In this document: in pieces, positions 1,925-36,002 of the stretch
Position numbering within the stretch: the stretch's first letter is position 1
How the letters are laid out: each line of letters opens with the position of its first letter
Assembly: GCA_964036045.1 (NCBI GenBank)
Contig: OZ038378.1
Span: 16,740,001-16,804,000, forward strand
Source of the DNA: Eutreptiella sp. 'Long Island Sound 2002'
Taxonomy: Eukaryota; Protista; Euglenida
Reading direction: 5' to 3'
DNA: 64,000 nt
Notes under the pieces: generated by a model
The model's database searches: none
What the model was told of the DNA's origin: nothing
The model's input: the letters and a program-made list of their open reading frames with translations, nothing else
Program-made: the position numbers and the translations under genes

Positions 1925-2650
1925 TCCTTGAACCCGCTCGACGCCGGACCGTCGTGGGCGACGCCTCCGCCTTCCTGCGTAGCCTAGGGATCAGTGTCAA
2001 GGTCGTGGCCGGCGACCTCAGCAAGGCTCAGGGCCCCCGCGGGGGGCCGTGGCTCTCCAAGGCCCTCAGCCCGAAAGGCCCGCTGGCCCGGTTCCGAGCC
2101 CTGTACCGGCCGGGCAACCCGACGAATGTCATCTACCAGGTGGGGCGCTCCTCCAAGCGCGAGCTGGACTAGATTCTCATGGGACCGGAGACCCCGTGCG
2201 TGGGCGCTGAAAAGGTCGTGCTCCCCGGTCTCAGCATCCACCGTATGGTGCAGTGCGACTTGGGGTTCGCGGAGCGCACCTTCGCGGCAGTGCACCGCTC
2301 CTGCCGCCGCTTTCACTGGTCCTAGCTCAGGCTGGAGCAGCAAGCGCCCGCGGCGGCGGCGGCCCCGCTAGCCTTGTGGTGGTCAGCCCACGCCCGCCAA
2401 ACCCCGAAAGGAGTTGTTCAGGCCGTGTGGACCGCCCTGCAGGGCCTTGTGCCCTCCAAGAAAGACTAGTGGCGCCCCCCGGGCCGTGACATCCTACAAG
2501 CTGCACAAGAACTGGATGCGGGCGTCGGGTCAGCTATAGCGGACGCGGTCCGGGCCTGGTGGCAGGCGCACCAAGACGCAGCTTACGGTGCCCTCGTGCG
2601 CGTGGAGAAGGCCAAGCTGGAGGGGGTGGCCCTGACGTCCCAGACAGGGC
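1925..2650 (+). mobile_element. Decayed non-LTR retrotransposon (LINE) fragment: AP-endonuclease domain and start of linker
   Basis: One frame gives VKVVAGDLS (GDxN motif), SKRELD*ILM (RxDYIL-like motif) and LPGLSIHRMV (SDH motif position). In-frame TAG stops at 2170 and 2323. Confidence 0.65.
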
Positions 2651-2659
2651 ATAGTGTAT

Positions 2660-3462
2660 TCGCCAGACTTTTGGTGAGAATTCTGGTTAGACCCTTGGTA
2701 AGATTTTTGCTCAGAGCTTTGGTTAGCCTTTTTTCAGACTTCTGGGTAGACCTTTGGCTAGACTTTGGGTAGATGTTGGTTAGACTTTGGTTAGACCTTC
2801 GTTGGTTAGACGTTTGGTTAGACTTTTGGTTAGACTTGTGGTTGGACTTGTGGACTTTGGTTAGACGTCTGGTTAGACTTTTGGTTAGACTTTTGGTTAG
2901 ACTGTTGGTTAGACTTTGGCTAGGCTTTCGGTTGGGCGTTTGGTTAGACTTTGAGTGAGACCTTTGGTTAGACTTTTGGTTGGACTCCTGGTTGGTTGGA
3001 CTTTTTGATTTGACGTTTGTTTACGCCTTCGGTTAGACGTTTAGTTGATTTTGGTTAGATCTCGGCTTCTAGGCTTAGATCTAGGCTTGTGGTTAGACAT
3101 TGGTCAGACTTTTGGTTGGTTAGACTTTTGGTTAGACTTTTGGTTGGACTCTTGGTTGGACTTTTTGATTTGACGTTTGTTTACGCCTTCGGTTAGACTT
3201 AGACGTTCAGATGATTTTGGTTAGATCTCGGCTTCTAGGCTTAGATCTAGGCTTGTGGTTAGACATTGGTCAGACTTTTGGTTGGTTAGACCTTTGGTTA
3301 GACTTTCGTTGGTTAGACCTTTGGTTAGACTTTTGGTTAGACTGTTGGTTAGACTTTGGCTAGGTATTCGGTTGGGCGTTTGGTTAGACTTTAAGTGAGA
3401 CCTTTGGTTAGACCTTGGTTAGACTTTTGGTTGGACTCTTGGTTGGACTTTTTGATTTGACC
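2660..3462. repeat. Degenerate minisatellite based on TTGGTTAGACT(T), with higher-order duplications of about 160 bp
   Basis: Dozens of TTGGTT(A/G)GAC units. The block CTTTTTGATTTGACGTTTGTTTACGCCTTCGGTTAGAC occurs at about 3001 and about 3161. Confidence 0.9.
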
Positions 3463-4689
3463 AGCTGCAGACTGCAAATCAGGAGTTGCTGCCATTCAGA
3501 CAGTGACGCCAGAATGTGTGCAGGCTTGGAAGGGGCTGCCCGACGTCGAAGAAGCCGGTCACTGCACTGGTGCAATTTTCGAGGGGCAGCTCAGGAGGAG
3601 GCGGGAGGTGGATGAATGTTCGTTGTCAGAGCTGTCAGACGGTGCTAGCCTGAGTAGCTGCCCTGCTTCTTCCCGCTCTTTGCTGCAGCATTCCATGGTC
3701 TGGATGTGTGCTGAATTCAGGCCTTGTGTCTGGCTGCAGGTTGTAGCACCTGGCTGTGTGTCGCCCAGGCTTGTACCTATGTGTGACTTTGGCACAGCTG
3801 TGCAGGGATTGGTGTTGCTTCTCCAAGTCACCACCATAGTAGTGGCCGTGCTTCAGTACTGGTTGTGCACAGAAAGAGCCATTGCATCGTTTCACAGATT
3901 TGGTGACCCCCCCCAGACTGACGTCAGCCCGTTGCTGCTTCCCTCTCTCTCTCTGAACTCTGGTGCTGCACCATTTTCACTGCTCAACTGTCTTAGTGCA
4001 GTGATTAGCCTGATTGGTTCTTTCAGATTTTTATGCAGAGGCACTTTTATGCGACGGCACAAAGTTCAAATCCATCCCATATCCGGGGCTAGTTGAGAAT
4101 TACCCGCCCAGTGGCCACGCCACAGGAACCATGGTTTCGCAGGTGACCGCTGTGCACGAGCTCTATAGCAAATTTGCCTCACTTGGCCCTCACTTGGCTC
4201 ATATTTGCCTTATCTTCACAGTACCAGTGGTGTCAGTATTTTGCTTTGCACACTGATCACTGCGCAGCACACTGCACTTTTCTGCGAGAAATGGAGGTTG
4301 CACAGCGTCGCTTTTGTGAGAGAGTGTATTACAGCACCGCAAAATCTGTTGCGCACAGAGAGAGAAACCGGACGCGTAAGGATTGTTGGACGCCTGATGT
4401 TTTGTTTCCTAATGCCGTTTTAGGAATTGTCAAATTCTGACAGCGCTGCCCCATTTCATTTTGTGTAGCATGTCTTTTTGTCTCAAAATGCACGCCCCAC
4501 TCTGTGCTCCTCCGCCCCCAACATGTTTCGTTGCTGCCTTGATTACTCATTTGGTCGTTGGGATATTCTGTTTAATCTTATTCGGTATATAGTGCCCCTT
4601 CGTCTTTGCTACCCCCCTCCATGGTGGCGACCGTTGTTCATAACATGGGCTGATGCTATGGGAGTGACAGATTTGCTGTGTGCAGCACT

Positions 4690-5330
4690 TTCCGTTGCAC
4701 TCCCACCTGCACCGGATTCCCACACCACGCCCGAGCTCCCGGCGGATCACCCGGCGGTCCTGCGTGACGCTTGTCTCCAGCCGCCGGAGGTAGGGCTCTA
4801 GCATCCAGCTGTAGCGCACCAGCCGCACCGGGAGCTTCTGGGCCAGGCAGAGATGGAGAACCGCACAAAAGCAAGCTGCTGGGGTCCCCGATGCAGGGCT
4901 ACCACGACACCCACCAGGACTCGAAGGCCGAAGCCCGGCAAGGCGGATACTAGAGGCCGCGGCAGTTCATTGAGGGATGTGGCTGGGGACCCCTTCCTAA
5001 AGGCCAGCTCCACATTGTGGTATTCCGGCAGGACCCCTGTGACCGGCGGTTCCGGTGGCCGGAGCAGCGCTGCGCGCATGCGCGAGATGAAGTGTGGGTC
5101 GTCCGTGGGATTGCTTGGATGCACGGGGGCCTAGAGGCGCGACAGGTCGATGCGGAGGCCCGCGTGGCCGCAGTGTAGCTCCTGCGCTTGGCGGAAAACC
5201 TCCTCCCGGAAGGCTTCCGGCGTGCCTGGGAAGCGGATGCCGTCAGGGTTGACCTCTGTGAGGAGGCGGAACTTGGGTGGCCCGAGGCGACCAAAGCCCA
5301 ACCAGAATGGAAGGGAGAAATTACAGACAG
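4690..5330 (-). mobile_element. LINE fragment (linker and start of RT) nested in the TIR element
   Basis: GC-rich island with FREEVFRQAQELH...L*...VELAFRKGSPATSLNELP, resembling the pre-RT linker and the KxPGxDG region. In-frame TAG at 5131-5133. Confidence 0.5.
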
Positions 5331-5353
5331 AGAAAGAACAAACACAGTTTGCA

Positions 5354-5803
5354 TCATCCGTGCTCACTGCAAATGTTGCAGATCAGATTGGACGTTTCCA
5401 AACGCCCGTCTTGGTCAAAAGTGAGCTTTGCACGCAACTGCCCGGTGGCCTGGTAAGACTTTCGCAGTGCATTGCAAGACGATTTTCTGGCACCATACTC
5501 GGGGTATCCCCCGTTGGGAACGTGAGACCTGATATAGGCATTTAACTCCTCCCGGAGATGATCCCTTGATTGACACTCTCTCTGATCATTGAAATACTGG
5601 GCATTGGAATCTTGCAAGAATGCCAAAAGGAATTGCCTTTTTTTGTTTTGGGCAATGCCTCCTCCTTCGGCTCTTGGCTTTGTATTTGTACTGCCACCAC
5701 CCTTAGCGTGCAATTCCGCAGCTGTCTTTCGTTGTATTCGTTCACTGGTGATGCCTAGGCGACTGTCGTTGCCACGCTGCCTCTTTTTACCGTGTTGAAC
5801 CAT
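5354..5803 (-). CDS. Hypothetical 149-aa ORF inside the TIR element
   Basis: Open frame with protein-like composition, co-oriented with and downstream of the GTPase. No family recognised. Confidence 0.3.
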   Translation of the reverse strand: MVQHGKKRQRGNDSRLGITSERIQRKTAAELHAKGGGSTNTKPRAEGGGIAQNKKRQFLLAFLQDSNAQYFNDQRECQSRDHLREELNAYIRSHVPNGGYPEYGARKSSCNALRKSYQATGQLRAKLTFDQDGRLETSNLICNICSEHG

Positions 5804-5914
5804 GTTCCCAGCACATGAGACACACAGGGTCTGCAGGGGACATTCTTCTCTGCCACCATCATCACCCCATGATGCCAGCAGTAGGTCATTGAAAGGTGAT
5901 GATGGTTGGCATTC

Positions 5915-7685
5915 CTAATCCATTAAGTACTCTGTGTCATCTGACCCTGAACTTCTGCTACGCTCCAACACACAGTGTTCGAGCTTCCGTATCTTAGCTT
6001 GCAAATGGGGCACAAGTGCCGCTTCAGAAGCAGTCTTTCGGCATGCCTCCCGCAAGGCCGCCACTTCTTGCTCCTTTGCATGTAATTCACACAAATATGG
6101 CATCACGGCTTCCAAAATCTTGCTGTCCATATAGTGCTGACCTACCTTGTAGTCAAACACCATTTTTGGACACAGCACCTCGCGGAGGGGCTTACGTGTC
6201 TCCTGCGCCTCTTGCGCAGCTTTCATAACCTCAGCTTTGTCAAAGGTAGGGGTCACAGCCCGCCTTGCAATGGATGACTCGACCCGTGTCCTTGCCAATG
6301 CCATCAAATGCACATCAGGGGGGAGGCACCAACATTTCTCAGCCCACCCAACCCTGGCTTGCACCTGCTCTCTGATACAAGACCTGGACCTGGTTTCCAC
6401 ATGGCGGCTGAGCATGTCGGGCAAAGACCGCGCCAACTCGTCTCTGACTGCCAAACCCAGGGCATACTTAAAATTATGAAAGGGCTTTGCCCACTTGGGT
6501 TGGTAGACATCAACCCCAACAAAAGCAGCCACACGGCTGCAGTGCTCTTGAAAAACTTTAGCAAGATCGCCCCCCTCAGAAATTTGGGCCAGTAGCTTTG
6601 GTTTTTCGTCCTCGCTGAATGGCACCAGCCTACTGTCGAGCTGATGGGTCCATCAGGTCAATTAGTGTGAGTCCCATTTGGCCCTTATTGAAGCCGCTGT
6701 CCCAGAGGTTGCACGCCTCTAGGGCACGTGTCTGTAAACAACGCAGTGTGGTTTCCTTGCCATCGCAGAATGAGTTGATGGTGCTCCACACAGTCTGTCT
6801 GAACGTTCGGTTGGCAGGAGTCTCGGAGTCAGAGTCTTCCACAGGAGGCTTGGGGTAGGGTAATGCTGTTAGACGGCGCAACAATTGTCTGACAGTCTCA
6901 ATATCAGGTGTCACAAAAGCACTGCCGTACCAGCGTTCGCGATGAGCCTCTTGCACGAGCTGCTCATTGTCGCGGCACCTGTCAAGCTCGACAAGCTGTG
7001 CCTGGCAATCTGCATACTATCTGAAGATGGCAGCCACTGGTGCAATCCATTTGCTTGCCGCTTCCGTGGACACACGCGTGTCCTTCACAGGCACAAGAAT
7101 GGTATGCAAAAAAGGTAGACAGACTGTCAGACAGAACACGGCACGTGCCACAGCGGCATCGTCATCACTGTCCAACCCTTCTATGTCCAAGGTGATTGTC
7201 ATATCACCAGTAGACACACTCTTTGTCAGAGCGGCCCAAGCGCCCTTAGTTACCCTCCCATTAAGGTGACCAACGTTGAAATTGGCACCCGTCAGGGACC
7301 TCAGGGCAGTGGATTTTCCTGCACCTGTGTCACCCATGGTGGCCAGCCCCCGGGCTGGTATATCAAAATACTCTTCGCAACCATCGGGGAAGTTGATGTG
7401 GACGTCGCTATCCTCATCACCGAATCTGACGAATTGAAACGGTGGCACCACAATCACCTGGGCACAGCAATGGGGACTCAAGGAATCAGCACCCCTGGCT
7501 CACGTTCGGTGACGGCGGGTGGCAACGAGTCAACAAGTGAACCATGTGGCAGGCGACTACAGTAGAATTGGAGGACACCTGGTCATCGACGCTCGGCTGG
7601 GTCCTGGTCAAGCCATACGATGCCCCCTCGGCGGTGGCAGTGCCACTGGCAGATGCTTGCGAGCCACTGTCTTCTGGCGCTTGCT
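5915..7685 (-). pseudogene. GBP/atlastin (GB1/RHD3)-family large GTPase with helical/coiled-coil C-terminus, disrupted
   Basis: G1 GDTGAGKS, FNVGHLNGRVTKGAW (cf. GBP TKGIW), LDIEG (cf. LDTEG), then AVFCL. One in-frame TAG at 7017-7019 and an apparent 1-bp frameshift near 6653 join ORFs 7017-7481, 6630-6956 and 5915-6625. A phase-compatible 46-nt GT-AG intron is likely at 7458-7503. Confidence 0.85.
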
Positions 7686-8138
7686 GCAAGGTGAACACAC
7701 AATGTCACTGTACTACGTTCGTGTAACTGCATGACGGGTGGATGCCCAATCCAATTTTGGGCACTCGTGAGGGCCAGTCTGTCCATTGGCTGTCCTACCA
7801 CACGTTCTGTCCAATACTACATGCCACAACGCATTCTTTAGATCACCTTGACGTCACCTCAGTGCTATCATGCTTGGTGTGGTTCTGCGATAGCGATGCA
7901 TGACCCGGTCAGAGGTGGAACAGATGCCTGCCACAGTCAGTGCAGCTTTGTTCTCAGTCCACTGAAACATCGTGCCACCTTGATGTCACCCCCAGTGTGA
8001 TTGTCGGGTGTGCGTCGAGCCATACCTCAGTTTGCAGTGGCTACTTCTTCCACATATCTGTCACTCCGGGCTGTACCACTGGTAGTCCATCCTTGGAAGG
8101 CATCCTTCAGCCAAACAGAGCCTACAAAGCACGCGCGG

Positions 8139-8141
8139 GCG

Positions 8142-8178
<37 letters not shown>
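8139..8178. repeat. (CG)n-(CA)n microsatellite
   Basis: Read directly. Confidence 0.9.
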
Positions 8179-8180
<2 letters not shown>

Positions 8181-9359
8181 GTATGTACCCCAAAGCACGG
8201 AAAACGAGAAAAGGTAAATCAACACCAACCAAAACGCCAATCTGGACATTCATTCACTCCACCCGCGGGCAGATTGATGTCACTTTCTGTTTGGATGCCC
8301 ATGTTCTATCATGCCAGTCAACTGTCATTGTCCAGCACATGGTGGCCAGGGGCTCGGGGGCGTAGATACCACTGAAAAATCTCAGGTTTTGCCAGGTATC
8401 GCTCTTGCACGAAGAATGCCAGTCGTGCATTGGAGACCAATGCCTTCAGGTTAGCAACCACTGGCACCGCATTCCCCATACATTAGTGGTTTGTAGTGCT
8501 CTTGTAATACTTTTGCAATGATTTGTAATATCCCTGCCAAGAGCTGTAATGGTTTTGGTGCTTTTGGGATGCTCTGACGCTCCTGTAATGCTTTTCTGTG
8601 CATCCTGAGCTTACAGGCATCATTGAGCCAAACAAAGCCTAAACATTTCATGTCGGAGCACAATAGGAACACACACGCGCGCGCACACAGAGAGACAGAT
8701 TTTGCGGTGCTGTATGAGGTGGCGCTACCTTTTTGCGGATGGTAATGTTCGAGCGTGCACAAAAAGCAGAACCGAATCATAATCCGGCCGCATTGCACAA
8801 GAAAGCCAGCACTTTCCATAACATTCCTCATACGTGCTCGTGCCACATTCCGATCATCAATAAAGCAATGGCCGGCTAAGACACTCCTACGGGCCCAAGA
8901 ACCTGGAGTCTTGATGTGTACATATATGCAATCATGCCAACACAAAGAAGGCGGGCACATGCAAAGCAAAGCAATGGAAATGTTGGATAACCTGCATAAA
9001 AAGCCCGCCACCGGCATGGGAAAAAAGGTCTCCACTGTACATACACTGTACATTTTAGTTTTGTGTTTATCTAGGAGAGTCGGAAATGGGTTCGGGGTTA
9101 AAGCGAGGTATTCGCCGAATCCGTTGTTCCTAAAGCGATTCCGATGACCTGCTGTTAGTTTCGATTGTTTATGCACCGGAGTAGGAAATGTGTATAGGGT
9201 TGGAGCGAGGCATTCCTCGAATCCGTTGCTGTTCTTCCAAAGCGATTCCGAAGACCTAGAGGATTAGGAAATGGGTTAAAAGGTTAAACCTTCCGGACAA
9301 AGAGAGATGGGTACTTCGGCAACTTTGCCCAAACACGCGACGGCACCAAAATGTAAGCC

Positions 9360-10955
9360 TCCTACTCCCGATACTCACCTGGCCAAGGAAAAAGACAACT
9401 GAAGGGGACCGTGATGTCATCCGACCTGGTGAAATAGACCCGTATGACCGTGGGGTCAACCACCTCGTTGAACGCCAGTCTTGATTGCGTGCTACACTTT
9501 GGCGCTAGCTTGCTACTCCGGCCCTTGGCTGCCGGCTTGGGCTGGGGCGGCGTGGGTGCACTGCTGCTACTGCGGCTGCTGCTAGTGTTGCTGCCGCTGC
9601 CGCCGCTACTCCCAACCCCCAGTGCCAGTCCCCTATTCATGTTCGGGTCCAACACTAGTTTCTTAATTACAATCTTAGTGTCATTCACCTTCGCATCCAT
9701 GGTAGAAAACCCAATATGCACGTCTGTTCCAAAAAGCAAACCAATGCCATGCGAATGAAATCGCTAGGCACTTTGCTGTATGTTGCCTTTGATGCCTCGT
9801 GGGCTTACTTGTTGGCCTGGAGCTGGGCCACATCCAAGGCAAACTCGGGATTCACCCTCGGGTGCTTCCCCTTTTTCTCTCGCCTCAACCGCTCGACATC
9901 GCCGTCGCCACCACGATACTCAGGTGTGCGGAAGGGCAAACTTGCTTGCACCGGTGTTTTTGGAAGGGGAAGCACCAACCCAGCATAGGTGTAGTTGAGG
10001 GGACCACATTCCTTCCCTTGCTTGATGAACTCTGCACACAACCGTTCTTGCTCGGCCGTATCCTTCTCTGCCGAATCCATAGACCACGTGCATTGCAATT
10101 TAGTCACCTTGAGCAATGGGTTAGGTGTTTGTACTGGGAACACTGGTGGCATGAAAGGGAACATGCACTCGACGGCCGCATCTACCCTGTCACCATCGGG
10201 AGAGGACAACAAAGGAGGCTCCACATCCTCAAACTGCATCACGTTGAGAGGGAGTATCGGATTGGGGTACAGATTCAGATTGGGAGTCGGAATCAGAAGG
10301 TGCTTCGGAAACAGGTTGGGAGTCGGGTTTGGAAATTTCTTGTTAAAGTGGTTGTGACTCGGAGTGTGATTGGGAAAAAGATTGGGAGTTTGAATCGGAA
10401 ATGGAAATCGCTTGAGAAAGAGATTGGGCGTGTGAATCGGGAAGTGATTGACCGAGTTTGCAAGTTGGAAACAGAAACGGCTTGAGAAAGAGATTGGAAG
10501 TTTGAATCGGGAAGTGATTGAGAGGAAGGTTGCGAGTTGGAAATGGAAATTGCTTGAGATTCGGAGGGTTGGGATTCCTCTATGTCTGTGTCCATGGCTT
10601 GTGCCTCCCCCGCCCCCTCCTTGGCTTTGCCCTTCGCTTTGATGTCCCGCTTTTGAACCTCCAGAAAGTAGAGCTGCCAAACGTTGCGCACGTCCTTCTT
10701 GACCTCCTTGAATGGCCGCTTTGCCAAGCCCATGTCCGTCTATTTGCATGTAGCATCACGCTGGAACATGTCCTTGTTGCCGGAGTGACACAAGCATTCC
10801 ATAATGGCTTGCGGCACATGTGGCTGCGCACGCAGATGGGCGCTAGCCTTTGCGGAAGCAAATTTCGCCGCGACCGCGTGAGCGACACCGTAGCCGCCTT
10901 GCATCGATGCAAACATGGCGCACCGCACCTCATTACTTTCATCAATTAAAGACAT
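9360..10955 (-). pseudogene. Decayed, apparently intronless ORF of unknown family with internal 71-72-bp and 18-bp tandem repeats
   Basis: Successive protein-like segments in shifting frames (10740-10955, 10293-10733, 9805-10749, 9362-9739). CTTGAGAAAGAGATTGG recurs at about 10411 and about 10482. Confidence 0.4.
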
Positions 10956-10971
10956 AGTGATCCACCAAGTT

Positions 10972-11110
10972 GTGTTGCAAAAAATGATCCAAAAATGTCA
11001 CTTCCAAATGTAAGTATCACCTAGAGCACACACAAAACAACATATTGATTGACCAATTTGTGTTGCGAAAAAATGATCCAAAAATGTAAATTCCAAATGT
11101 AAGTATCACA
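10972..11110. repeat. AT-rich direct repeat (about 50 bp x2, period about 90 bp) in the spacer between two minus-strand decayed ORFs
   Basis: GTGTTGC..AAAAATGATCCAAAAATGT...TTCCAAATGTAAGTATCAC occurs twice. Confidence 0.85.
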
Positions 11111-11339
11111 CAGCAACATATTAGACCAACAATGTGTCTAAAAAAAAAAGAACCCAAAATGGAAATTTACTTGTTCCATTAATTTAGCTTCCGAAAAATG
11201 ATCCACAAGTCCACAAGACCATTGACACAAAGTTGAAAGTGCAATAGGCAAAATGGTCCAAAATGGTCCAAGAATGATCCAAAGTGATCCACGGATCACC
11301 ACCCTTGAACCCCCCACCCCCCCTACCTGCCGCACGACG

Positions 11340-12370
11340 GGGTTGGGTAATGTCAATATTCATCACGCCAAACGGGAGCACGGTGTGTTCGGCTGCCCAT
11401 ATCCTCTTTAAAATGGGACTTAGAATTTGGCCTCTTGGACAAACATCAATACAATTCCTAATCCGTTTCAATGGTATGAGCGACCTTTAACCATTGTTTC
11501 AATTAGATGGGGTCCACTCACTTGGCAGAAGTCAACTTTGACAACCATGAAGTGTGTTTTTCGTGTGCCTTAACAACGACAGCTTCCACCTCACTCTCAC
11601 CATCCTCAACCATCGTTGGCTGCTGCGGGGGAAGTGGTGGTGGAACGGATGACCCTTTTGAAAGAGGTTGCATTAAGAAGTATTGGGCATGAAGCAATGC
11701 ATACAACGGATGGGCATCAACTTTAAGGCCCTCGTACCAACTTTGCAATGACCCCTCTTCCTTCTTGGCATTAAATATTTCATGAAATTCTTTTTGTCGT
11801 GTTGGCCGTTAAACATAGTACTTGGTGTAGTCAAAGATTTTCCATAGTTGTTTGTACTACTCCTTCTTGCAATCCGCACAGTCGCCAAAATTGGGGTTTC
11901 CGGCTTCTTCTTAGGCTTCGGTGGCGGCAAGCTTTGCATGGGTAAAGTTTGGGCTTTTTTTTTTGTGAACGTTGCCGGTGCAAATATTGGGCACTATTCG
12001 TGGCACCCACTGGTGCAACCTGGTGGGTATTTGGTGCACGGGCTTTCCTGCGTTGTGTTGTGTTCTTCGCACGCGAAAATAGCTTGTACTGTTTCAACGG
12101 CGGTTCCGGGTCCGATTGAAAATTGTCAACCTCAATATCACTCGATTGCATAGGGTCAAGCAGGCTTTCAGGGTGCGTCGCGGTCACGGATTAAACAGAG
12201 GCACCATCATCGACCGTGGATGCCCCATTACTGGTTGCGGCATCATGTGCCATTTGTACATCACGTAACGCAAGGTTAGATGCGGGTTCGGGTTCGGCTT
12301 CGGCTTCGGCTACGGGTTCGGCCGACGGGGAACTGTAAATGGAGGTCCTTAGGTTTGCAGCCTGGTTGCG
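11340..12370 (-). pseudogene. Decayed ORF of unknown family
   Basis: Chain of protein-like fragments in different frames (12191-12403, 11831-12187, 11673-11939, 11518-11748, 11184-11471). Confidence 0.3.
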
Positions 12371-12374
12371 CATG

Positions 12375-13305
12375 GTGCCCTCGACCCACACCTCGGCGCA
12401 CACAGAGTTCCACTGCGCGTACTGCTCGCAGCCCTACAAGGGCCGGGGGGACATCATGGTCCACTCTTGCCTAGTGGTGCTCGCGGCGGCCTTGACCGGT
12501 TTCCGGGCCGCGTGCGCCCTGCTGGGGTCCCGGGGTTATGCCATATGCTGGCGCGACACCCTGCGGGCTACAGTCTACGACAAAGCGGGCCGCACCATGC
12601 ATTGGAGGCTAGCGCGGGACGAGGATGTGGTCGTGCAGTCAGAGAGCGCCACGTGGGACGTGGGCATCACGTGGTCGGGGGTAGTGTGGACCAGGTCTCC
12701 ACAACCGTGGACTGCCCGCGAACGCGCAACCCTAATGCGGGGTACTTGCAAGCAGTGGCAGACCGGGTGGTCGCACCTGATGCGCGCCGGCAGGAGCGGG
12801 TGGCCGGCGGGAGCTGGTGGCCGGCGGGAGGGGGTGGCCAGCGGGCTTGTCCCGGCCCCTCGATGACGCGGGCCACTTATTACGCTACGCCATTTGCGAG
12901 TCCGCGTGCGCGATCGCCGGGCCGTGCCCTGAGCTTGAGGGCCGCGCAGTCCCCGTGTCATTGCTTGACCAGGCGGAACGTGGGGCGTGCCCGGACGTGG
13001 TCCTCAGAGTGGGTGCCCCGCCGTCCCTGCAGGGGGCAGCCCCGGAGTTGGTCCTGGCCCCGCCCGCAATCTGCCGGGCTCAGAGCTTTACCATCCAACC
13101 GTCCGGCGACAGGCCCTTGCTTGCGTTCCCGGATGGCACGGGGCCGCCCAGCCTCCTCGCGGCCCTGCAAGCCTTCTTCCGTGTGGAAGCGGTGCCCCGG
13201 GGGACCAGCCGGAGGAGGGCGGAGGTCCCGAGCCCCGGGCCGGTGACCCAAACCTTGGGCCTCAAGCTGGAGGTCAATGGGGACGACGAGTACCTCCTCA
13301 GCTAG
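12375..13305 (+). mobile_element. LINE ORF2 C-terminal fragment with CCHC-type zinc knuckle
   Basis: FHCAYCSQPYKGRGDIMVHSC(L)V = CxxC...H..C, then a Trp-rich tail. Abrupt GC-rich island. The CTA codon after the last Cys is probably a mutated CCA (Pro). Confidence 0.5.
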
Positions 13306-14199
13306 TCCCCCCCCCCCCCCCCCGGCAACCCCCCGATTTGAACCTGGCATCAGAGGGGGGGGGGGTCGGCTCACCCCGTGGCCGGACATCCCCCCGCCCA
13401 AGGCTGGGATCTGTGGGGCTACGCGCAACCACGGGGGGTCCCAGCCGCCGGGACTCGCGGGACAGCGCCGCCTCGGTGGGCCATGACCTCGCCCCCCCGG
13501 GCCGCTGCGTGCCCCGGCACGCCACACCTCCTCTCTCCCGTGCCAAGCTTGTCGCGCCTCGCCATCGCCCCCAGCCGCGTGCCCTCTCCCCAAGCTTGGG
13601 AAGCAAGCACCGGGGCAGGCCCTGATACAGCCCGCAGCGCAAGCGGACCTCAGTGGGCCATGACCTCGCCCTCCGAGGCCGGCAGGGCGCCCGGTGTACG
13701 CGGACGCCCTGTGCACACCACCAACTGGCCCTCCTTGACCTCCACGACGCACACGGGAGGCCCAGTCTAAGCGGGCAAACAAGCGCACCGTTAGCCCCAC
13801 CGTGGGCCAGCGGCGGCGCCAGCGCAAGGATTGTTGGCCATTGCATTGGTATCGCCGCTTTAGCCTGTCCCATGCCCGCTGGGCCCTCCTCACGTTGGCG
13901 CGTGTCCGCCCGTGCAACCGAGGGACGAGACCCAGGAGGTTGGGACGACCCGCAAGGCCGGGAGGGGGTAGCACGGGAGGAGAGTTCCAGAAGAGGGTGG
14001 GGTCGGGGAGCAGTGCTAGGGCAGGACGGGTGACAGCCTGGTCGGCGAGGAGGGAAGATAGCAGGCTATGGAACCCCCCCCTAAGCTGGGACGCCCCCCC
14101 CCCCCCATTTTTCGGCCTTACCAACAACCACCCGTTACTAGGCCCAAGGGCACGGCCACCCCGGTGAGATGTTCGGGCAAGGCGCGACCTCACTTGTGG

Positions 14200-15444
14200 A
14201 CCCGGTCGTGCATGCACGGGACTCCCCCCCCCCCCGGTCAGGGCACAGCGACGCGCGGCACACTCCGCGCTGTGGGTACAGCTTTGCACCATGCCACGGC
14301 GCAATATCGCGTGCCCTCCGTACCACGCCCTCCCGCCGCCGTCCCCATACCTGATGGGCCGTCGCGGGCAGTAGCCCATTCCCCGTAGCCGCCTGCGCAC
14401 CTGTGAGCCGCACAACCGCCGCTAGATGGCGCGCTGCGACCCGGCGCCCTGCACCTCTGGCTCACCCATGTGCCCGGGTGCTGCCCCCCTCGCCTCCCGC
14501 GCACCGAGCAGCCCCTGACGAGCGTCACCATCGCGATGCACTCCCTGGCGGTGCAGTTCCCCAGCCTCATCAGCCTGGAGGACATCCTTATGGGGTGCTT
14601 CCTCCACTGGACGGCTACGGGGGCGGACCTTAGATGGGGGCTCTCGGCGCTGCAGCGCGTCCCCAAGGGCCTGGCGGTGTCAGGGCCCGCGCTCCACAAG
14701 GCCCTCCGCTAGAATTATGGCGCGGTAGCCCTGCTCTGACAGCACCTCCGACTCCAGTGGAGGTATGGCACGCAACCCGCTCAGGTGGCACCTCTGCTGG
14801 CGCCCCTCTGGATCTTGAGTCGCCTCCCCGACCCGCGCGGCGGGGCCGCCACCCCGCAGGCCTGCAGCAGCGCTCCCCTAGCGCTAGGAGCCCTGATAGA
14901 GGGCTGGGATGGCGAGGAATAAGAATCCCGAGGCCATGGTGTTACCCACGACGGCACTGTCTGGTGCCTCTCCCGGGGCGAAAGGCCCCTCGCCACTCCC
15001 CTAGACCTGTATGCGGCTGCTCGCGCGGTGCTGGCCTCGATCCCGAGGGTATACGCCACGTGGTATGCGGTCTTGCCCGCACAGGGTCGCCGCCGCTGCC
15101 CCCGAAGCACCAGTACCCCCGCGCGGGGGACGACGCCGCAGCGCGGGCGTGGCTTGCAGCCCACGAGCACGTGCGGACGTGGCGGCAGCACCGCAGGGTG
15201 CAAGTCTCCCCGGGCGGTCTTCCGATGAGGCCACTGTGACCCCCCCCCCCCCCCCCTGCCCCCCCCGCCCCACCCCGCCCATTTCGCGGCACGGCGACAG
15301 GACTGCCCCCCGGCCCGCAGACGCGTCCGGGAGTGCACTGCATGCCTGGCTTGCCGATATACGGAGTCGTCTGGACAGCCATCGAGCGCCCCCCAGGCGG
15401 CCTATAGCCCTCAAGATTGGCCCTCAAATCAAATCAAATTAAAT
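14200..15444 (+). mobile_element. 3' portion of a LINE ending in a (CAAAT)n tail
   Basis: Interrupted GC-rich reading frame (LHLWLTHVPG..., PLTSVTIAMHSL..., stop TAG 14710-14712), ending at TAA 15440-15442 within CAAAT x3 + TAAAT (15425-15444). Short-repeat tails are typical of non-LTR 3' ends. Confidence 0.5.
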
Positions 15445-15506
15445 CCCTTCTTGAACCCCTCCTCAAGTCCCCCCCCCCCCCCCCCCAAGGGGCCTCCGGC
15501 CAACAA

Positions 15507-17900: not shown

Positions 17901-18599
17901 TGAGATAGACACCCCGTATGCGCCACCTCTCGCATTTGCGGGATCGGTTGAGTCATCTTCATCGTCCCAACCGCATGAAATTAGACCTCATGCCGGTCCT
18001 TAGGCCTATAGAATTTACGCCGCAACGATGCCTTGTGTTTTTGTGATCTTCTGTGACATACGCACTGGTGATTTCGGAGAATATAGGGTGCCCCAAGACA
18101 ACCGCTACTGTACTTCCATTGAAATTCGTTGGATGTCTAGAATATCAAGAGGAGACGGCTTCTAGTGTAGTTAGACACGTGTTTACTGGAACCAACGGAA
18201 GGTAATGTAGCATTCACATGTTTTCTTTTTTCCTCGATGCCACCATCGTTACCCGCTATATCTAGTGATTTCAATAAGGCAGTAGGCTCTAACACAGATC
18301 CACTTGCAAGCGCCAATGTGCGAAGTCGTATGATACATGCATCATAGCTAAAAGTCTATACATAAGCAACAACAAGCTAGGTAGCTTAATGATTGTTTTG
18401 CTCCATTGCCGCCCACGGTGTAATTTCCCCATGGATAACTGCATCAGGGCTTGAGTCTTTGGTTGAGCTTTCGTGTGACGGTGTCGCCCACCCGGTTGCC
18501 AGCACTGCCGTACCCTTTGTTGCAGAAACTTGTCACGTAACGTTAGCGGTTTTTTCTCTTTTGTGCATTAGTCATCCCCCGCGGGGCCCCGGACGAAGG

Positions 18600-19365
18600 T
18601 CACGGATGGTGCCGCCAGCTAGGCACACAGGCAGTCCATCTCCCACGTGACCACCGTACGTCACCAGGCGGCGCGACGAGAACAGCTAGGCCGTCCCGTC
18701 CAAAGCGCTCGTGAGCGGGTACGTGCGCTCGCACGCCATGCCCAGGCCCACCGCTGCCAAGTCGTGGGCGCGCGCCTGTAGGTTGGACAGGAGGCCTGAC
18801 CACTCAGTGTTGTGCTGTGCTGGCACGTACCAGTCGGGCCGGCTGCGTCCCAAGGCCTCGGCGAAAGCCACCCTGGCTTTGTCCACCGAGAGAGATTGGG
18901 AGGGGAGACCCCCGTCATTACTGAGGGTGGCAGAGGTGCAGTCTGCCCCCACATACCGGACCGCCGCGGGGGCCATAGCCAGCATCTCGGCAAGGTGCCA
19001 TGCCTCCAGCTTGCCCGCCCACTCGGCGGCCCATGGGCTGGCGGCCTGCTTCAGGACCCTTGAGGCGAGGGTTGCAAGGACCCCTGCAGTGTATGCCACA
19101 AGCGCGCCCTAGCCCAGGATGTCGCCTTCGGGCGTGACCTCCGTCCGTTTCTCCGAGATCTTGGAGAAGTACCCCACGCGTTGGTTGTCGCCCTAGGCCC
19201 CTCCATGGCGTAGCTTGTACGGGCCCACCAGCCCGTACGGGGAGGCGACCCGAACGTCGAGCCCATCGTAGAAGTTCTGAAGCCAGGGCAGCACAGACTC
19301 CTCGGGGGCCTCGTGATCCCACGCCCCGGCAGCCTCGCGGTGTGGGTTGCAGAAGACATTTCACT
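18600..19365 (-). mobile_element. LINE reverse-transcriptase fragment (pseudogenised)
   Basis: LQNFYDGLDVRVASPYGLVGPYKLRHGGA*GD matches the non-LTR RT GxxQGD region, and AVRYVGAD matches the YLG motif. In-frame TAG stops at 19193-19195, 19109-19111 and 18686-18688. Confidence 0.75.
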
Positions 19366-19883: not shown

Positions 19884-20571
19884 TCACGAGCAGCAAACAG
19901 CGGTTTCTTCATTTGTCAATGAATCTTCCCAAAGTGGTGTTTGGTCCCAACTTTGCATCGGCACATTGCCATTTTCATCGAGGCCTCGTCGCACTCGAAT
20001 GACATCTCGCCAAAGCATGCCTCGCCTTCGGTCCCGCTCTTCGGGTTTCAATTTGAATTTCTTGTTGGTCTTCCTGAAACTCACATTGAACCGCTTACCC
20101 CACTTGTTCAGCCATTCTCTCCTTTTGCGGTTAGATACGTCAATGGGTGGCACATCAGAATCCTTGGGAAGTTCTCCATTCAACACCGCAATTTGATACG
20201 AAGCTTTGGAAAAAGTGCTTGCTTTGACTCGCAACAACCTCTGCGATACAGGCGCCGGGCTGTACTATTTGTTTTGGCTGAGACATTGTGGTTTCTTCGA
20301 TTCGTTGGGATAGGCTTCGCAATTCCTTGCAGCTGCAATGGATGTCTCAGCTTACTTCGTTGATACGTTGGCTACTTTCGGTGATGTGGGCGTCAACCTC
20401 ACCTTTTGCAAATGAAACCAGCTCACGCATGTATGTACCCATGCTCAGAGCGCTCGCTTTATTCAAATCAACATCCGTCTCCGAAGCATTGTCACCTTGC
20501 TTAGGTTTGATACGCTTCTTGTCACACTCAATCTTCTCAGCTAACCCTTTACCTTTCTTCCATTCCTTCAC
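19884..20571 (-). mobile_element. pogo/Tc5-like (CENP-B HTH plus DDE_1) transposase remnant
   Basis: REWLNKWGKRFNVSFRKTNK (end of CENP-B-type HTH), then MQSWDQTPLWED (first catalytic Asp motif, D(E/Q)TP). Frameshifted. TIRs not located. Confidence 0.7.
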
Positions 20572-21789
20572 GTGTTTGTGTGTTAGTTTCCGCGCATGTC
20601 GGTGCCACTGCTACCTGCCTCAGTGGAATTGCCACTTGCAGGAGCTTCATTGTCGCCACAGGAAGTGGAGGAGTTTGAGTCCCTGACAAAATCAAGACAA
20701 TTGGAGGAGGATGAATCGACGTTCACCTTCCACGAAATTTGAGCGCGGTGATTTTCGACTAGCGAGGGTTGTGCTGATGGTTGAGCGCGAAGCTTCGGTG
20801 ATGACAATTGCTGAACGAGCTTTACGAAGGGCTCGGCAACAAGAAGGTTTGGGGCCGAAGAATAATGATAAAGTTCTCAGAAGCACATCAGATCCAGAGT
20901 AGCAAAATGGAACTTAATGAGACGCTCCTATGTTCTATAAATAGCGCACAACAGGCCATCCTCCATTTGTCTGTCTTCGTTGCAACGCCGTGCAAGCCTC
21001 GGCAACTGAAATGTATCAACTTGAAATCTGGAGTCTTTGATGCGCACGGTGCGAGACAGCCACACCTTATCTTTGCCTACATTTATATCCCTTTTCCTTG
21101 GGACACTCCAGCCACAAGGGGACATTCTCCACCCGTTATTGGGTAGTGCAGCTACGTCAACGACCTCCTTTGGGACGACACCTATGGCGACCCCGACGAG
21201 TTCTTCGAAGCTGCGGCAGCTACCTATCCCCACACCCCCAAGGGGACTCACCAAGCACTTTACGCCCTCCTTGCACAGGTTGAGCAATGATCATTTTCCT
21301 TCCAATGCCTTTTGGAGATCCAAAGACCGTGGTGGTGTTCCCCCGCAAGAACTTAGATGGTAGTAGAGGCAGCCACCTGTGGCAGGCTCTACCACCGTGG
21401 GTTAATGTGTCCATTATTCCGTCGGCGCAACGTGTACATGATGTGAGCTGTGTAGTGCCCCACGTTGCCCTTACCAACGGCCACGACCACCGTCGCCACT
21501 GGTTGGAATAGGAAGCTGAGCAGTTGGAGCCGAAGGAAGAGCCGTCTTCGGTGAAGGAGTCTCTCCTCGTGGACATTCACCCGTGACAAACCGTCCGACC
21601 GCCGGGAGACCATGCGGCTCCATTTGACATTCATGACCCTTACAGCCAACCGTCTTTCTTCGGCGACCCCGGCTACTTGGCCTAGCACAGGCTCTGTGTC
21701 ATGCTACAAATTTGTTTTGAGACGGGGTGCCCCAAGAGCAGGCGAGAAGAGCTGAAATCGAGACGGAGGAACAGACAGCGCAACTTAAT

Positions 21790-22910
21790 AATCCCAAGAA
21801 CTAGTACCGGCCACAGATCCAAGAGCCAAGAGCAGCCAAGCACCCAAGAGCCAAGAATAGCCAAGGTCCCAAGAGCCACCAGCAGCCGAGGACCCAAGAG
21901 CGAGGTACCGCCAAGAACCAATGAGTTCGGAATGGCTGAGACCCAAGACCATGGAACGGCAAAGGACCCAAGAGCCAAATAGGGCCAAGGTCCCAAGAGC
22001 CAGGACGGACCAAGAACGCAACAGCTGGGACGGAATACCAAGGAAAGGCCAAGATCCCAAGAGCCAAGGGGAGGCCAAGGATTAGACGGCGACCAAAGGC
22101 CAAGGTCCCAAGAGCCGAGAACAGCCGAACACCCAAGAGCCCGGAGAGGCCAAGGAGCAAAAAGCCGGAAATGGCCAAGGTCCCAATACCCGAGAGAAGA
22201 TCTAGGAGCGGCCAAGGACCCAAGAGCGGCAAGCCGCCAAGGACCAAAGAGGCAAGAGTGGCCAAGGTCCCAAGAGCCACCAGCAGCCAAGGACCCAAGA
22301 GCCACAAATGGCCAAGTACCCAAGAGGCAGGAACCCCCAAGGACCAATGAGCTAGGAATGACCACGGTCCCAAGAGGCGAGAGCGGCCAACAGCCCAAGA
22401 GCCAAGAGGAGCCAATAACCTGAGAGCAAGAATGGCCACGCCCCAACAGCAACGAAGGGCCGAGGTCCCTAGAGCCAGGGACGACCAAGGACCAAGGAGC
22501 CAAGAATGGCAAAGGTCCCAAGAGCCAAGATGGGCCACGGACCATAGAGCTAGGAAAGGCTAAGGTCCCACAAACCAGAAGCGGCCAAGGACCCAAAAGC
22601 CAAGACAGAACCACGTGCAACGAGCCAGGAGCGCACAGGGACCAGAGAGACAACGGCAGCCAAGGACCCAAAATCCAAGAGAGGCCAAGGACCGCAGAGT
22701 CAGGATTGGCCAAGGGCCTGCAAGCCCGGAGCACCCAATGAACCTAGAAGCCAAGGTATGCCAAGAAACCGGGAGCAAAGAGCGGCCCAGGACCCAAAAG
22801 CTGGGAGCGGTGAAGGGCCCAAAGGGGGCCTCAAAGGTCAAGCGCCCAAGAGCCACGAACAGCCAAGGCCCCAAGAGCCAAGAAAAGCCAAGGACCCAAG
22901 AGCCCTCAAC
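21790..22910. repeat. Purine-rich degenerate satellite based on GGCCAAGG(T/A)CCCAAGAGCCA
   Basis: More than 25 recognisable CCCAAGAGCC / GGCCAAGG units. It explains the long low-complexity ORFs on the minus strand. Confidence 0.9.
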
Positions 22911-22930
22911 AGGGAAGGGTGCAAGCACAG

Positions 22931-22962
22931 GGTCAGGGTTCGGGTTAGGGCTAGGGTGAGGG
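22931..22962. repeat. Short degenerate telomere-like array (GGGTCA GGGTTC GGGTTA GGGCTA GGGTGA)
   Basis: Read directly, at the end of the satellite. Confidence 0.6.
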
Positions 22963-23852
22963 TCCAAGAGTGGGGGGGGCGGGGACATGCCAGGCCACAA
23001 AGTAGGACCACTAGTGCCTGTATTCTGGGTACTAAGGCAGCCCACGCCATGCAAGTGACCCAATCAACCGCGACTTGGAGTTCGGGGGTAAGTTTGCATC
23101 CTCAGGCTAGCACTGCTTTGGCACTCGAGGGGGGGCCTTCAAAGGGCAAGCAGCTCGCAACCCTAGTACTAGTACTAGGTCAATGCGGCCATCCGGTATG
23201 GCTTTGAAATAGGATACGCCAGTAAGTCTAGTGGACACCGATGATTCTGCCCAAGGGACACACGGGGGTACACCCTCCCATTATGGCACGCCCCCCACAC
23301 TGGCGGCGATCAACGCTCCTAGTGTCAATTGGGGCCATATTGTTCGGGGCCAGCAATCAGAAACAACGGGATGCAACCCGCTTCCCCTCGTGCAGTGTGA
23401 AGCCTCTTCCTCCTTGTCATAGGGGCAACGCTAGAGGGACACCACGGAGGGTGTATCCATGACCAAGCACACCTATCTGCCTACCTACCTACCTTGCTAC
23501 CCAACCCGCCAGGGCGGTGAGTGCTGCCATTGTGGCGGTCGTTACTATCCTCACTTGAGTGATAACTCCTTGTGCGCGTTCAGTGTCGCTGACTGGCATC
23601 ATCTCCTCTTTATTGGACGCTCCCAGCCTAGCTACGTGTACGTTGAGGGCTTGCAAAGCCGAGCTCTCTTCGAAGTCTCCTCCTATGGCACGCTAGACTG
23701 TCTCAAAGGCGACATCCATGGCCATCCCATCAAAGCCAGTTCTTGGCACCCAAGATGTTGTGAACCACGGTTAAGAGCCCTGCATAAACCTTCTCAAGCA
23801 GCCTTGGCCAACCTCACTAGTGGTAGCGGCAACGCACCACCACCATCGTCAC

Positions 23853-23921
23853 ACCACCACCACCACCACCACCACCACCACCACCACCACCACCACCACC
23901 ACCACCACCACCACCACCACC
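23853..23921. repeat. (CAC)n microsatellite
   Basis: About 23 perfect units. Confidence 0.95.
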
Positions 23922-24052
23922 TACTTCCAACTCCACTGCCCTTGGAAGCATTAGGGCTTCGTCCAGGAGCCTTTAGGCCTACTACAAATCCCTTCCGGTT
24001 CACTTTGATAGTTTGCATTTGGGTTCAAACACACAGAAGGGGGGCGGGGAGC

Positions 24053-24640
24053 TCAAGGAGGCAAGTGCCGCACGTGCCAATAAATGTTACGAGCAACAAG
24101 AGGCCGAGAGACCCTAGGCCGAGGCATTGAGGCATGCCATGTATGTTCGTTTGTTAGTTGTCGGCATGATGATGTGACGGTTATTGGAGTGCATGTTGGT
24201 ATACATGTGCTAGTGTTGTCGCTTTCAAGTAAAAGATAGAGGTAAGTTGTGGCGTGCGGAAATCTATGTAGCGCCCGCTCCGCATAGCTGCACAATGCAA
24301 ATGAGCGCAATGCCAATGGCAATAGACGAGTAGTGCAAATGCTTGTCTGCAATGGACTAGATGTGGATGAAAATGTCATTAGCCATCACCACCAACACCA
24401 CCACCACATCGCACATTTGTGAAGATACGTGCCACCCTCTCAATGAACAAGCACTGCTACAATTGCTGGATGTAGAAATTCTGTTGAGAAACTCTATGGA
24501 GATAATCTACTGCATGTCACAGATACCTCCCCCCAAAACCTCGACAATGCAAATCAACACTCCACAGCCGCCCACAACCCTCCACCGCCCAACCCAAGGA
24601 ATTGTCATTGCATCATATGTGCATTGCCGGTAGGCTTCCC
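24053..24640 (-). mobile_element. Possible DIRS/tyrosine-recombinase retroelement-type RNase H remnant
   Basis: LLPLALRSFAL...YLLLESDNTSTC...LVARNIYWHVRHLP resembles the DIRS1-type RNase H pattern (LEL.A..AL / SDN.T / NI.L.A.HIPG). YDAMTIPWVG upstream is a weak DAS..GWG match. Confidence 0.4.
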
Positions 24641-27600
24641 GGTAACCAGTCTTTGCGCACTGGCATAGGCACATACATGGTTGGGCATGGGCGTGATTCC
24701 GGTCCTCGGGTGGGTTCCACTCCAAAAACCCGAACTCTAGGTTCCGGCTTCACCAGCGGCGGTGATGTTGTCGGTGCTCGTGTTGGCACCGATTCCACAC
24801 CTCTGGCATGTTTCAACGGTTGATATTCATTGAAGTAATCACTTGCACCCTATAAAATTATCTATGCATCGAGAATGCACCACACACACCAAAATAGATC
24901 CAGGCACCTTGTATGCGCTCAAGACATCATTTATGCACCGCCAATGCACAATTGAAATCATGTTTCATGACAGAGAGTTTCTTGGCGTATGTGGAGTGAG
25001 GTTGAGAGCCCCAGCCCCCTTCCACCGAATGTTGCCAGTGTAAGCACCATGGCAACCCGGAATCTGAGGCATGTTGATATTGTGCCCATTTGACACTGCG
25101 AGCGATTTACCAAGGATCATAGACTCGGAACCTGACTCGTCCCAGCTAGTTAACGAACAAACATCCAACAAAACAAACAAATACAGAGCCCTCAACAAGT
25201 ATCAGCAACCGTCCACAATTCGTCCGTCCACAATTATCGACAACTAGCTAATGGTCATGGGCACCACTGCACTGGTGTGGAGGGTCACCATTGCGGTTGC
25301 TGGCGACGACACTATAGGACAGCCATGGGTGCCTAGGAAGGTCCTACAGGCACCCTTGACCGTCCTATGGCGTTGTAGTCGGCACTAGCTAGTCGACCCA
25401 GTAATGCCGCTGTGCTTTCATGCATAGTGCCGCATTCTTGTAAGCTTGTGTGCTCGCGTGCATATGGCTGTATTTGAATTACTAGGACCCGTGCTCCGGT
25501 GTGCAGGGCTACATTTGATCAGCAAGGCCATAGTTTTTCCTCCACAAGGCTGCATCCAGGGGGGGCACCTGACGCGGCGCACACGGCGCACAAATTTGGC
25601 CATTTATCCCGACCAAGCAACCATGCTTACCACCTAGGGGTTTTCTCTTCGATGGGGCCATTTTTGGAGGGCAAAAATCCTGGGCCGTGCCAGGAAAACA
25701 CGCCGCAAAAGTAGCATGCGTCGCACGCGTGGCACACATATTCCCCCTTTGAACTGGTAGTGCCTATGGTTTAGTGCATTGGGACACTTTTGAAGTGCAA
25801 GCCCTTGTGCTCCACCGCTTTTGAACTACACGGCAATGCGCTCTAGTGCACAAGATTGTGTTCGACCTTCAATTTTTGAAAGGGCTTGTTTTCTCGTCTG
25901 CCCCTTGTCTGTGTTCTCAGCATGCCATAGGCCATGGAGCATGCCTTCTGCTACGGTTGCGGGATGGGGCACCAAGCCAGTTTCCACTGGTTGTCGCCAA
26001 GGCGGACAATTGCCACGTGTGCCTCACGCCTCCCTACTTCAGCAAGTTTTGGTCCCAACTCCTTGAGCCTGAGCTGCGAACCCCCCCCCCCTTTATGAAA
26101 ATGGAGGTTGTTCCCAATCTTGTAGTCAGTTCCAAGAAAAAGGCACTCTTTGCCGCACGTTAGTGGGACCAATTTCATACTTTTGTTTGCATTTGCACAC
26201 GTGGATCACCTATTTGGGTTATGCGGTTAGTTGACAAATCTAGGGTGCCGCATGACGGCATGCCTTGAGCTCTGTATGGCCAACAATAGGAGCAAACCTA
26301 TGAATGGCTGTGGCGCCTAGCAGCCCACCAATCATGAAGTCCGAGCTGTCGAACAATGCTCAAGTATTTGCCCACGTACGGGCATGCATGTTTGTGCACG
26401 CCTAGAGGCCCCTGTTTTTGGGACATGGCTTAGCCCCTTGCTTGCCACTCTTTGTTTCCAATTCAAACAATGTCATGCTATCCTTAGGTCATGCTATGTG
26501 AGCTTTGCGTTAAGCATGGTTTGGCGACATTTGTGCCTTTTTTTATATGAGGGATACTCCACACATGAAACCCCCCCCACCCGCACCCTCTCCCTCACAC
26601 ATTGTACGGTGATGGGTGGGGATTGGTGTTGTAGTGGGAGTTGCGGGTTGGTCCACTTGCATCTGCAAGCGCCCCTCCTCTGACATGCCCGGGATACAAC
26701 GGAGCACATTTGCATCTGAGATATCCCTTGCTCTAGAGGCCTCACCCATTCCGTTGGCTTGCCGCCGTTCAACAAGTTGTCCGGAGGTGCTTGGGCCTTC
26801 GGCCTCCCAAGCAATGCCGTGCTTGGCCGGTTTCAGAGTTCGGGGGAACAAACCCAGGTTAATACTTGACCACCTCCTCCCCACAGCAATGTTTTTGAAC
26901 TTGGGAGGGGGGGTTGTGCGCGGTGTTTGTACATCCCCGCCCATCACTCTACACCACCTCCCATCCACCACCGTGGGTGGCACTTGTGGCATGCGAGGGA
27001 GTGGACACAAAATACACACACCACGGACACAACTAGGGGTAGGGGGGCACATGATGCCACAAGGAGGACTGAACGCGGGAACTAGCAGGCGGAAGGTTGT
27101 TATGTACCCCCATCGGGGAAGTTACCTGCAAGTGGACATCCTAGGGCTCAAAAGCTGCCGTTGGGGAGGGATCCCCCAGCGCCGGCGTGGGGTGTCCAAG
27201 TGGACGCACCAGGCCAATGGCGAGGGCAGTTGCCCTCCTCTGTGTGGACCCGAAACAGAACACTGAAACAGGGAGAGTCCGGGTGCTTCGTTGGCACAAC
27301 CTACCAAGGGAAGGAAAGGGTAGGTACTGAGGTAAGGACAGGCAGAGAGAGGGGGTGGTGAGAGGCCGATGGGCACCGCCGCATATGGGGGCACCGGGTT
27401 CAAGGGAAGGGCAGCGGTAAGTGGTGAGAGGCCAACAGGCGTCGCTAGCTACAGCCAAAGGCCCCCTTCCCAAATACAAACACTGGCACTTCGCGTCTAC
27501 GTCATGCTAACGGTGTCTACAATCATCAGATTGTGTCTACATGTGGCAGATGGCGTCTTCAGACCATTGACTGCCTTGCTCTGTGCACGGGTATACAGTG

Positions 27601-35856: not shown

Positions 35857-36002
35857 TACCAACGATTGCACAATTCGTCCAAAGCTACCACTTGTGGCTG
35901 CCGTTCTGGTGCCAGACCGCATGTAGGCTCCAGTCGCATGTGGTATTGAACCCTTTTGCCAAACCCCCGAAAACACCCCCATGGCCCATCATTCTTCCGC
36001 AG

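Follow-up and report, generated by a model that had tools for sequence, protein, structure and literature searches.

C-to-T decay at CAG/CTG as strong as at CG suggests symmetric CWG methylation in repeats of the euglenid Eutreptiella

We analyzed a 64 kb window of the genome of the euglenid Eutreptiella sp. 'Long Island Sound 2002' (GenBank assembly GCA_964036045.1, 2.28 Gb; contig OZ038378.1, positions 16740001-16804000), in which copies of dispersed repeats carry recurrent CTAG tetranucleotides. Our subject is the C-to-T (C>T) decay of these repeats at CG and at CWG, that is, at CAG and CTG (W denotes A or T, D any base but C, H any base but G, N any base). The G+C content of the window is 53%, with observed/expected ratios of 0.63 for CpG, 1.33 for TpG, 1.37 for CpA and 0.62 for TpA. 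The repeat copies and the cyclase open reading frames (ORFs) on which the analysis draws are listed below by their position in the window.

1936-2650, forward strand: piece B1, an old G+C-rich repeat copy with 80-86% identity to many genomic copies
4728-5290, forward strand: piece B2, an old G+C-rich repeat copy with 75-83% identity to genomic copies
8880-11335, forward strand: family C, a younger repeat copy with 84-91% identity to genomic copies; its consensus has 49% G+C
12317-15450, forward strand: family A, an old repeat copy with 69-82% identity to genomic copies, 12.5% from its consensus, which has 76% G+C
18575-19145, reverse strand: piece A2 of the same element as A, with 77-85% identity to genomic copies
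28311-29105, forward strand: ORF with an exon encoding the start of an adenylate/guanylate cyclase domain (PF00211, E 2.5e-05); 0 CTAG, 15 CCAG/CTGG
35724-36887, forward strand: ORF with an exon encoding the remainder of the cyclase catalytic domain (PF00211, E 2.8e-12); 0 CTAG, 9 CCAG/CTGG

Consensus sequences place the ancestors of the G+C-rich repeats at 72-76% G+C and about 120 CpG per kb. At the loci of the 3.2 kb family A (L006-L025, including L007:400-5100), the 570-base A2 always adjoins A in inverted orientation; B1 and B2 form a similar inverted pair and directly adjoin each other at other loci. B, A2 and A recur a few kb apart at C5:142.73-142.75 Mb, C9:12.09-12.11 Mb, C24:0.26 Mb and C5:2.30 Mb. 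This arrangement suggests that the A, A2 and B pieces are parts of one large composite element without a recognizable protein domain. An initial annotation of the window had taken the fragments for long interspersed nuclear elements (LINEs) and had read a QGD motif and a knuckle in them. No RVT_1 domain was found by Pfam in 20 ORFs of the window and 10 ORFs of better preserved copies, a scan of ORFs rather than of every frame, and in tblastn the proteins of five LINE-type (RVT_1-matching) loci of the genome matched neither the region nor the repeat consensus sequences significantly. With neither a reverse transcriptase domain nor a match to LINE-type proteins, the fragments are not recognizable as LINEs, and the two motif readings are likewise unsupported; position 19193, the site of the supposed QGD motif, lies outside the alignments.

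The recurrent CTAG lesions that the initial annotation had reported in the window's repeats were confirmed. All of the CTAG sites it quoted are in the sequence (2169, 2322, 5131, 12471, 14709, 18686, 19109 and 19193), its counts of 12 CTAG in 22901-23900 and 11 in 55.3-63.3 kb are correct, and the two cyclase ORFs indeed lack CTAG while together keeping 24 CCAG/CTGG. On its own, a lack of CTAG in about 2 kb of exon has no statistical significance, and 3 of the 12 CTAG in 22901-23900 belong to one small CTAGTA tandem. The 55.3-63.3 kb interval, at 1.4 CTAG per kb, lies under the window mean, and across 1925-25700 CTAG stands at its Markov expectation (observed/expected 1.15), which weakens the argument from counts. 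Nor does the window as a whole show a depletion of CWG, which is replenished by CG decay at CCG/CGG. Since tetramer composition alone neither shows nor refutes decay, we used copy-versus-consensus spectra instead.

To this end, 40 copy-bearing loci from the genome were aligned, giving 20 sequences for A, 13 for A2, 12 for C, 9 for B1 and 9 for B2. The five alignments together comprise about 7.8 kb of majority consensus, from which the copies diverge by 5-16%; substitutions from consensus to copy were tabulated per context with both strands pooled. A strict filter retained sites that were gap-free within 6 bases and had at least 10 of 12 flanking matches. Lesions in the window were scored against a consensus made without the window copy, from 9-20 other genomic copies.

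The window's CTAGs could be traced in this way. Among the 29 CTAG in the aligned window repeats, 15 came from CCAG/CTGG through one transition, 2 from CCGG via two steps and 4 were ancestral, the remaining 8 being of other or unclear origin. The one-step lesions are at 2169 and 2368 (from CTGG) and 2322 (from CCAG) in B1; at 4798 and 4950 (from CCAG) and 5131 (from CTGG) in B2; at 9505 (from CTGG) in family C, where three further CTAG are ancestral; at 12609, 14422 and 14709 (from CTGG) and 14016 and 14138 (from CCAG) in family A; and at 18619 and 18686 (from CCAG) and 19109 (from CTGG) in A2. The family A copy has 10 CTAG, compared to 1 in its consensus, and its sites 14884 and 15001 are the two that derive from CCGG. 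The lesions proposed earlier at 2169, 2322, 5131, 14709, 18686 and 19109 are all among these one-step changes, while 12471, which had been read as CTA for an original CCA, aligns to CCTG, needs two changes and is ambiguous. The gain of CTAG in repeats is likewise borne out, with 3.2-7.0 CTAG per kb in the window's G+C-rich copies compared to 0-0.7 per kb in the consensus. Against consensus sequences built without them, the window copies show C>T at 0.130 of CG, 0.141 of CAG, 0.145 of CTG, 0.060 of CCG and 0.054 of CHH sites.

The context dependence was general across the genomic copies. In the five alignments under the strict filter, C>T per site and copy was 0.089 at CG, 0.087 at CAG and 0.096 at CTG, compared to 0.029 at CCG and 0.024 at CHH. 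The 16 CNN trinucleotides fell into two groups, with CGN, CAG and CTG at 0.083-0.102 and the rest at 0.015-0.048; CAC (0.022), CAT (0.025) and CAA (0.015) were at background. The ratio of CWG to background was 3.6, 3.6, 3.4, 3.3 and 2.7 in the individual alignments (3.4 in family C), with a Mantel-Haenszel odds ratio of 3.72 over all five (site bootstrap 3.2-4.2). In the nine-copy B1 alignment, C>T was 0.131 at CAG, 0.107 at CTG and 0.047 at CHH, and in family A the ratio was at least 2.4 in 18 of 20 copies, which are spread over many chromosomes. CG itself decayed at 3.5 times background, so that the ratio of CWG to CG was 1.03 (95% interval 0.91-1.14), and at least one C>T was found at 57% of CWG sites, 57% of CG sites and 19% of background sites. 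For T>C, G at +2 was without effect.

These spectra bear on the null explanation, under which transitions in G+C-rich DNA are context-free, CTAG arises merely because CCAG/CTGG is common, and TAG after C follows from composition. It would accommodate the region-wide CTAG ratio of 1.15 and the density of CCAG/CTGG in the G+C-rich consensus sequences, which is 17-29 per kb. However, it predicts equal C>T at CWG, CCG and CHH, and the unfiltered pooled odds ratios against CHH were 2.9 for CAG (p 8e-52) and 3.2 for CTG (p 1e-67), with CCG indistinguishable from CHH (not significant, p 0.40); the context tables reject this explanation, which we regard as extremely improbable. The copy-versus-consensus comparison by context suggested in the initial annotation places C>T at CWG, CCAG included, above CCG and CHH. 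It is also very unlikely that the excess is an artifact of alignment or consensus errors, of subfamily differences counted repeatedly, or of base-calling errors at modified motifs. The copies do lie 5-16% from consensus and changes common to several copies contribute, but the signal was stronger under the strict filter than unfiltered, was present in changes private to one copy, in all five alignments and in the 18 of 20 family A copies, and was absent for T>C. Base-calling errors at a motif would themselves imply CWG modification and could not reach 9-14% of sites.

Within CWG, the flanking bases made a smaller difference. C>T was 0.116 at CCWG and 0.074 at DCWG (p 5e-8; background 0.025), a 1.6-fold effect of C at -1, while with D at -1 the rate was 0.073-0.075, still 3 times background. 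The base at +3 had no effect, with 0.116 at CCWG followed by G and 0.115 without. The initial annotation had proposed a modification at the second C of CCAG on both strands. What stands of this proposal is a non-CG, strand-symmetric excess of C>T that generates CTAG; the context is wider than proposed, being every CAG/CTG, since DCWG still decays at 0.074. The further remark that the fragments remain CpG-rich is true, although CG was not spared, as the parity of CWG with CG shows. They are still CpG-rich because their ancestors, at 72-76% G+C, held about 120 CpG per kb, and this is the only source of the richness.

The mutation spectrum, its context, its symmetry and its generality over copies and loci are direct observations. 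Their best explanation, judging from the spectrum, is probably that the repeats have borne symmetric 5-methylcytosine at CWG and CG, followed by deamination. At CG and at the two cytosines of CAG/CTG alike, the repeats would be methylated now, or would have been for the greater part of their time in the genome, and the 5-methylcytosine would deaminate spontaneously to thymine. CWG would thereby turn into TWG/CWA as fast as CG turns into TG/CA, about 3.6 times as fast as other cytosines. CTAG would be the decay product of CCAG/CTGG, the most mutable subcontext and one that is very common in the G+C-rich repeats, and CCGG would reach CTAG in two steps. That the context is palindromic and decays on a par with CG suggests that a methyltransferase recognizes it, and a CWG-recognizing C5-methyltransferase would presumably maintain the methylation.

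Several points weigh against symmetric CWG methylation as the cause. First, methylation is something we infer from mutations only. Second, the sampled DNA amounts to about 250 kb of the 2.28 Gb genome, and if A, A2, B1 and B2 all belong to a single composite element, as is possible, the independent families would number only two. Third, the CWG excess falls to about 2.2-fold when only C>T changes private to one copy are counted. It is about 5-fold among changes common to 2-3 copies, as expected from recurrent hits at hot sites. Fourth, scans of the genome for BAH, RFD and chromodomains found no chromomethylase-like gene: BAH gave one match, which is not near any DNA methyltransferase (DNMT) match, RFD gave none, and the chromodomain scan was swamped (28,654 candidates), with none of the top 150 adjoining a DNMT match. 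Lastly, C>A and C>G are also raised at CAG/CTG, at about 2 times background (0.018-0.027 compared to 0.008-0.013), and not at CG (0.012), which counts against a simple reading because plain deamination of 5-methylcytosine does not predict transversions.

The raised transversions at CWG, not seen at CG, would be expected if CAG/CTG were intrinsically mutable without any modification, through slipped or hairpin structures at CWG-rich tracts or through a polymerase or repair bias. We consider this quite unlikely, since the C>T excess of 3.6-fold is much larger than the transversion excess and the CWG rate is within 10% of the CG rate. The C>T excess also persists when sites with a nearby gap (within 6 bases) or with over 2 mismatches among 12 flanking bases are dropped, and isolated CWG sites in the 49% G+C family still show it.

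A methyltransferase search of the genome, which the initial annotation had called for, returned at least 55 PF00145 matches, including intact ORFs, so candidate C5-methyltransferase genes exist; none was linked to CWG by the BAH, RFD or chromodomain scans. Multi-exon DNMT genes occur, for example, at C14:495-498 kb, C2:124.03-124.07 Mb and C23:25.52 Mb. By PDB comparison, some of the intact intronless DNMT ORFs are nearest to M.HhaI, a resemblance that says nothing on their target site. Two intronless ORFs, L028:1-2454 (reverse strand, 818 aa) and L030:358-2466 (reverse strand, 703 aa), have an N-terminal C5-methyltransferase domain, nearest to bacterial M.HhaI, and a C-terminal PHD finger. 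This domain order is unusual, and atlas features weakly suggest DNMT3/ADD proteins. A different group, L032-L037, is a near-identical dispersed repeat whose ORF of 356-376 aa encodes the first half of a C5-methyltransferase domain; these loci and about 30 further PF00145 matches cover profile positions 1-170 only. The copies of the L032-L037 repeat total only 14 C>T changes, not enough to build a spectrum. This repeat is possibly akin to retrotransposons of E. gracilis that are reported to bear a DNMT.

Among the family A copies, the least diverged (L016 and L013) have nearly all their C>T at CG or CWG; in L016 these make up 33 of 35, with the background at 0.004. The pooled 3.6-fold may accordingly understate the true excess in place by a wide margin; alternatively, decay may be front-loaded. 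The same pattern could mean an early burst, as expected if cytosines at CG and CWG were deaminated, with no stable methylation, at about the moment a copy was duplicated or inserted, whether by a process like repeat-induced point mutation (RIP) or by catalysis through a methyltransferase. The many DNMT-like genes in the genome, some of them on repeats, would also suit such repeat-directed editing. Yet CAC, CAT and CAA decay no faster than background (0.015-0.025), CTG and CAG are equally mutable, the -1 base shifts the rate only 1.6-fold, unlike what 5'-reading deaminases would do, and the palindromic context together with the parity with CG favors methyltransferase recognition. Repeat-directed editing is, in our judgment, unlikely.

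Compared with known systems, symmetric CWG methylation followed by deamination would share its chemistry and effect size with the decay of methylated CpG in vertebrates (CG methylation is also reported for E. gracilis), differing in that a second, trinucleotide context of equal strength appears here. Bacterial Dcm, which acts on CCWGG, resembles the present pattern in the hypermutability of the inner C, CCWG having the highest rate of any subcontext here (0.116), but a Dcm-type CCWGG context was rejected: G is not needed at +3 and DCWG still decays at 3 times background. Neurospora RIP is likewise a C>T decay of repeated DNA that makes stop codons. Canonical RIP acts preferentially on CpA irrespective of the +2 base, and least on CpT; it was rejected on finding CAH at background (0.015-0.025) compared to 0.087 at CAG and 0.096 at CTG, with CG likewise affected. 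DNA deaminases of the APOBEC type read the 5' base (TC or CC), and were rejected because the rate is set by W at +1 and G at +2, with only a 1.6-fold effect of the -1 base. Mammalian DNMT3 also targets CAG, but its non-CG methylation (CAG/CAC) is strand-asymmetric and CA-specific, whereas in these repeats CTG decays like CAG and CAC stays at background.

The closest likeness to the proposed CWG methylation is with the plant chromomethylases CMT3/ZMET2, which methylate CHG in a loop with H3K9 methylation. Both cytosines of the symmetric CAG/CTG are affected, in repeats and beside CG; there is a strong preference for A or T at +1, and C>T at the outer C of CCG hardly exceeds background (0.029 compared to 0.024 at CHH). 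Plant CMT3/ZMET2 prefers CWG over CCG, and ZMET2 does so 3-fold in vitro (PMC9256654), a milder bias than the near-complete exclusion of CCG seen here. The present case also differs from the plant one in that it concerns a euglenid, CWG equals CG, the pattern is known from a mutational proxy, and no chromomethylase was found. The initial annotation had invoked an uncharacterized genome-defense pathway; nothing requires one, as the pattern fits the known plant CHG/CWG type.

Three further features of the window lie apart from this question. A short telomere-like array of 12 units (ACCCTA / ACCCTAGCCCTA) at 1554-1625 sits inside the chromosome arm, just upstream of B1. A degenerate 25-base tandem array of 1.1 kb (GCCAAGGACCCAAGAGCCAAGAACA) occupies 21793-22904 and contributes to the region's large excess of CAAG/CTTG. 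On the reverse strand, the ORF at 7020-7481 has a weak match to an RHD3/GBP-type GTPase domain (E 4.9e-06, below the Pfam cut-off).

In the related E. gracilis, DNMT1, DNMT2, DNMT4 and DNMT5 are present (PMC7463849), and its DNMT1 branches within a chlorophyte lineage (PMC12344493). Euglena 5-methylcytosine is described as near-default at CG, the only context reported (bioRxiv 10.64898/2026.05.21.726589). In one Euglena nanopore study the calling model covered CG alone (PMC12455990) and would have missed any CWG methylation. We found no report of CHG/CWG methylation in Euglena or this group in the literature, where two nanopore studies describe only CG. A survey of eukaryotic methylomes suggests that the CHG and CHH contexts evolved with the CMT and DRM enzymes in streptophytes (PMC12344493).

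Set beside this literature, what would be new here is a methylation footprint of a known kind, the CHG/CWG type, in an unexpected lineage. We lean slightly towards the view that a euglenid, a member of Discoba, keeps symmetric CWG methylation in its repeats at a CG-like level, by means of an enzyme that either came from the green-algal ancestor of the plastid (DNMT1/CMT-like) or is convergent. A candidate for a convergent enzyme is the HhaI-like methyltransferase fused to a PHD finger (L028, L030). A CWG footprint as strong as that of CG, in a discoban alga with a green-algal plastid, would mean that this type of methylation either moved by endosymbiotic gene transfer or arose again independently, and it would bear on how a repeat-filled genome of 2.3 Gb silences and erodes its repeats.

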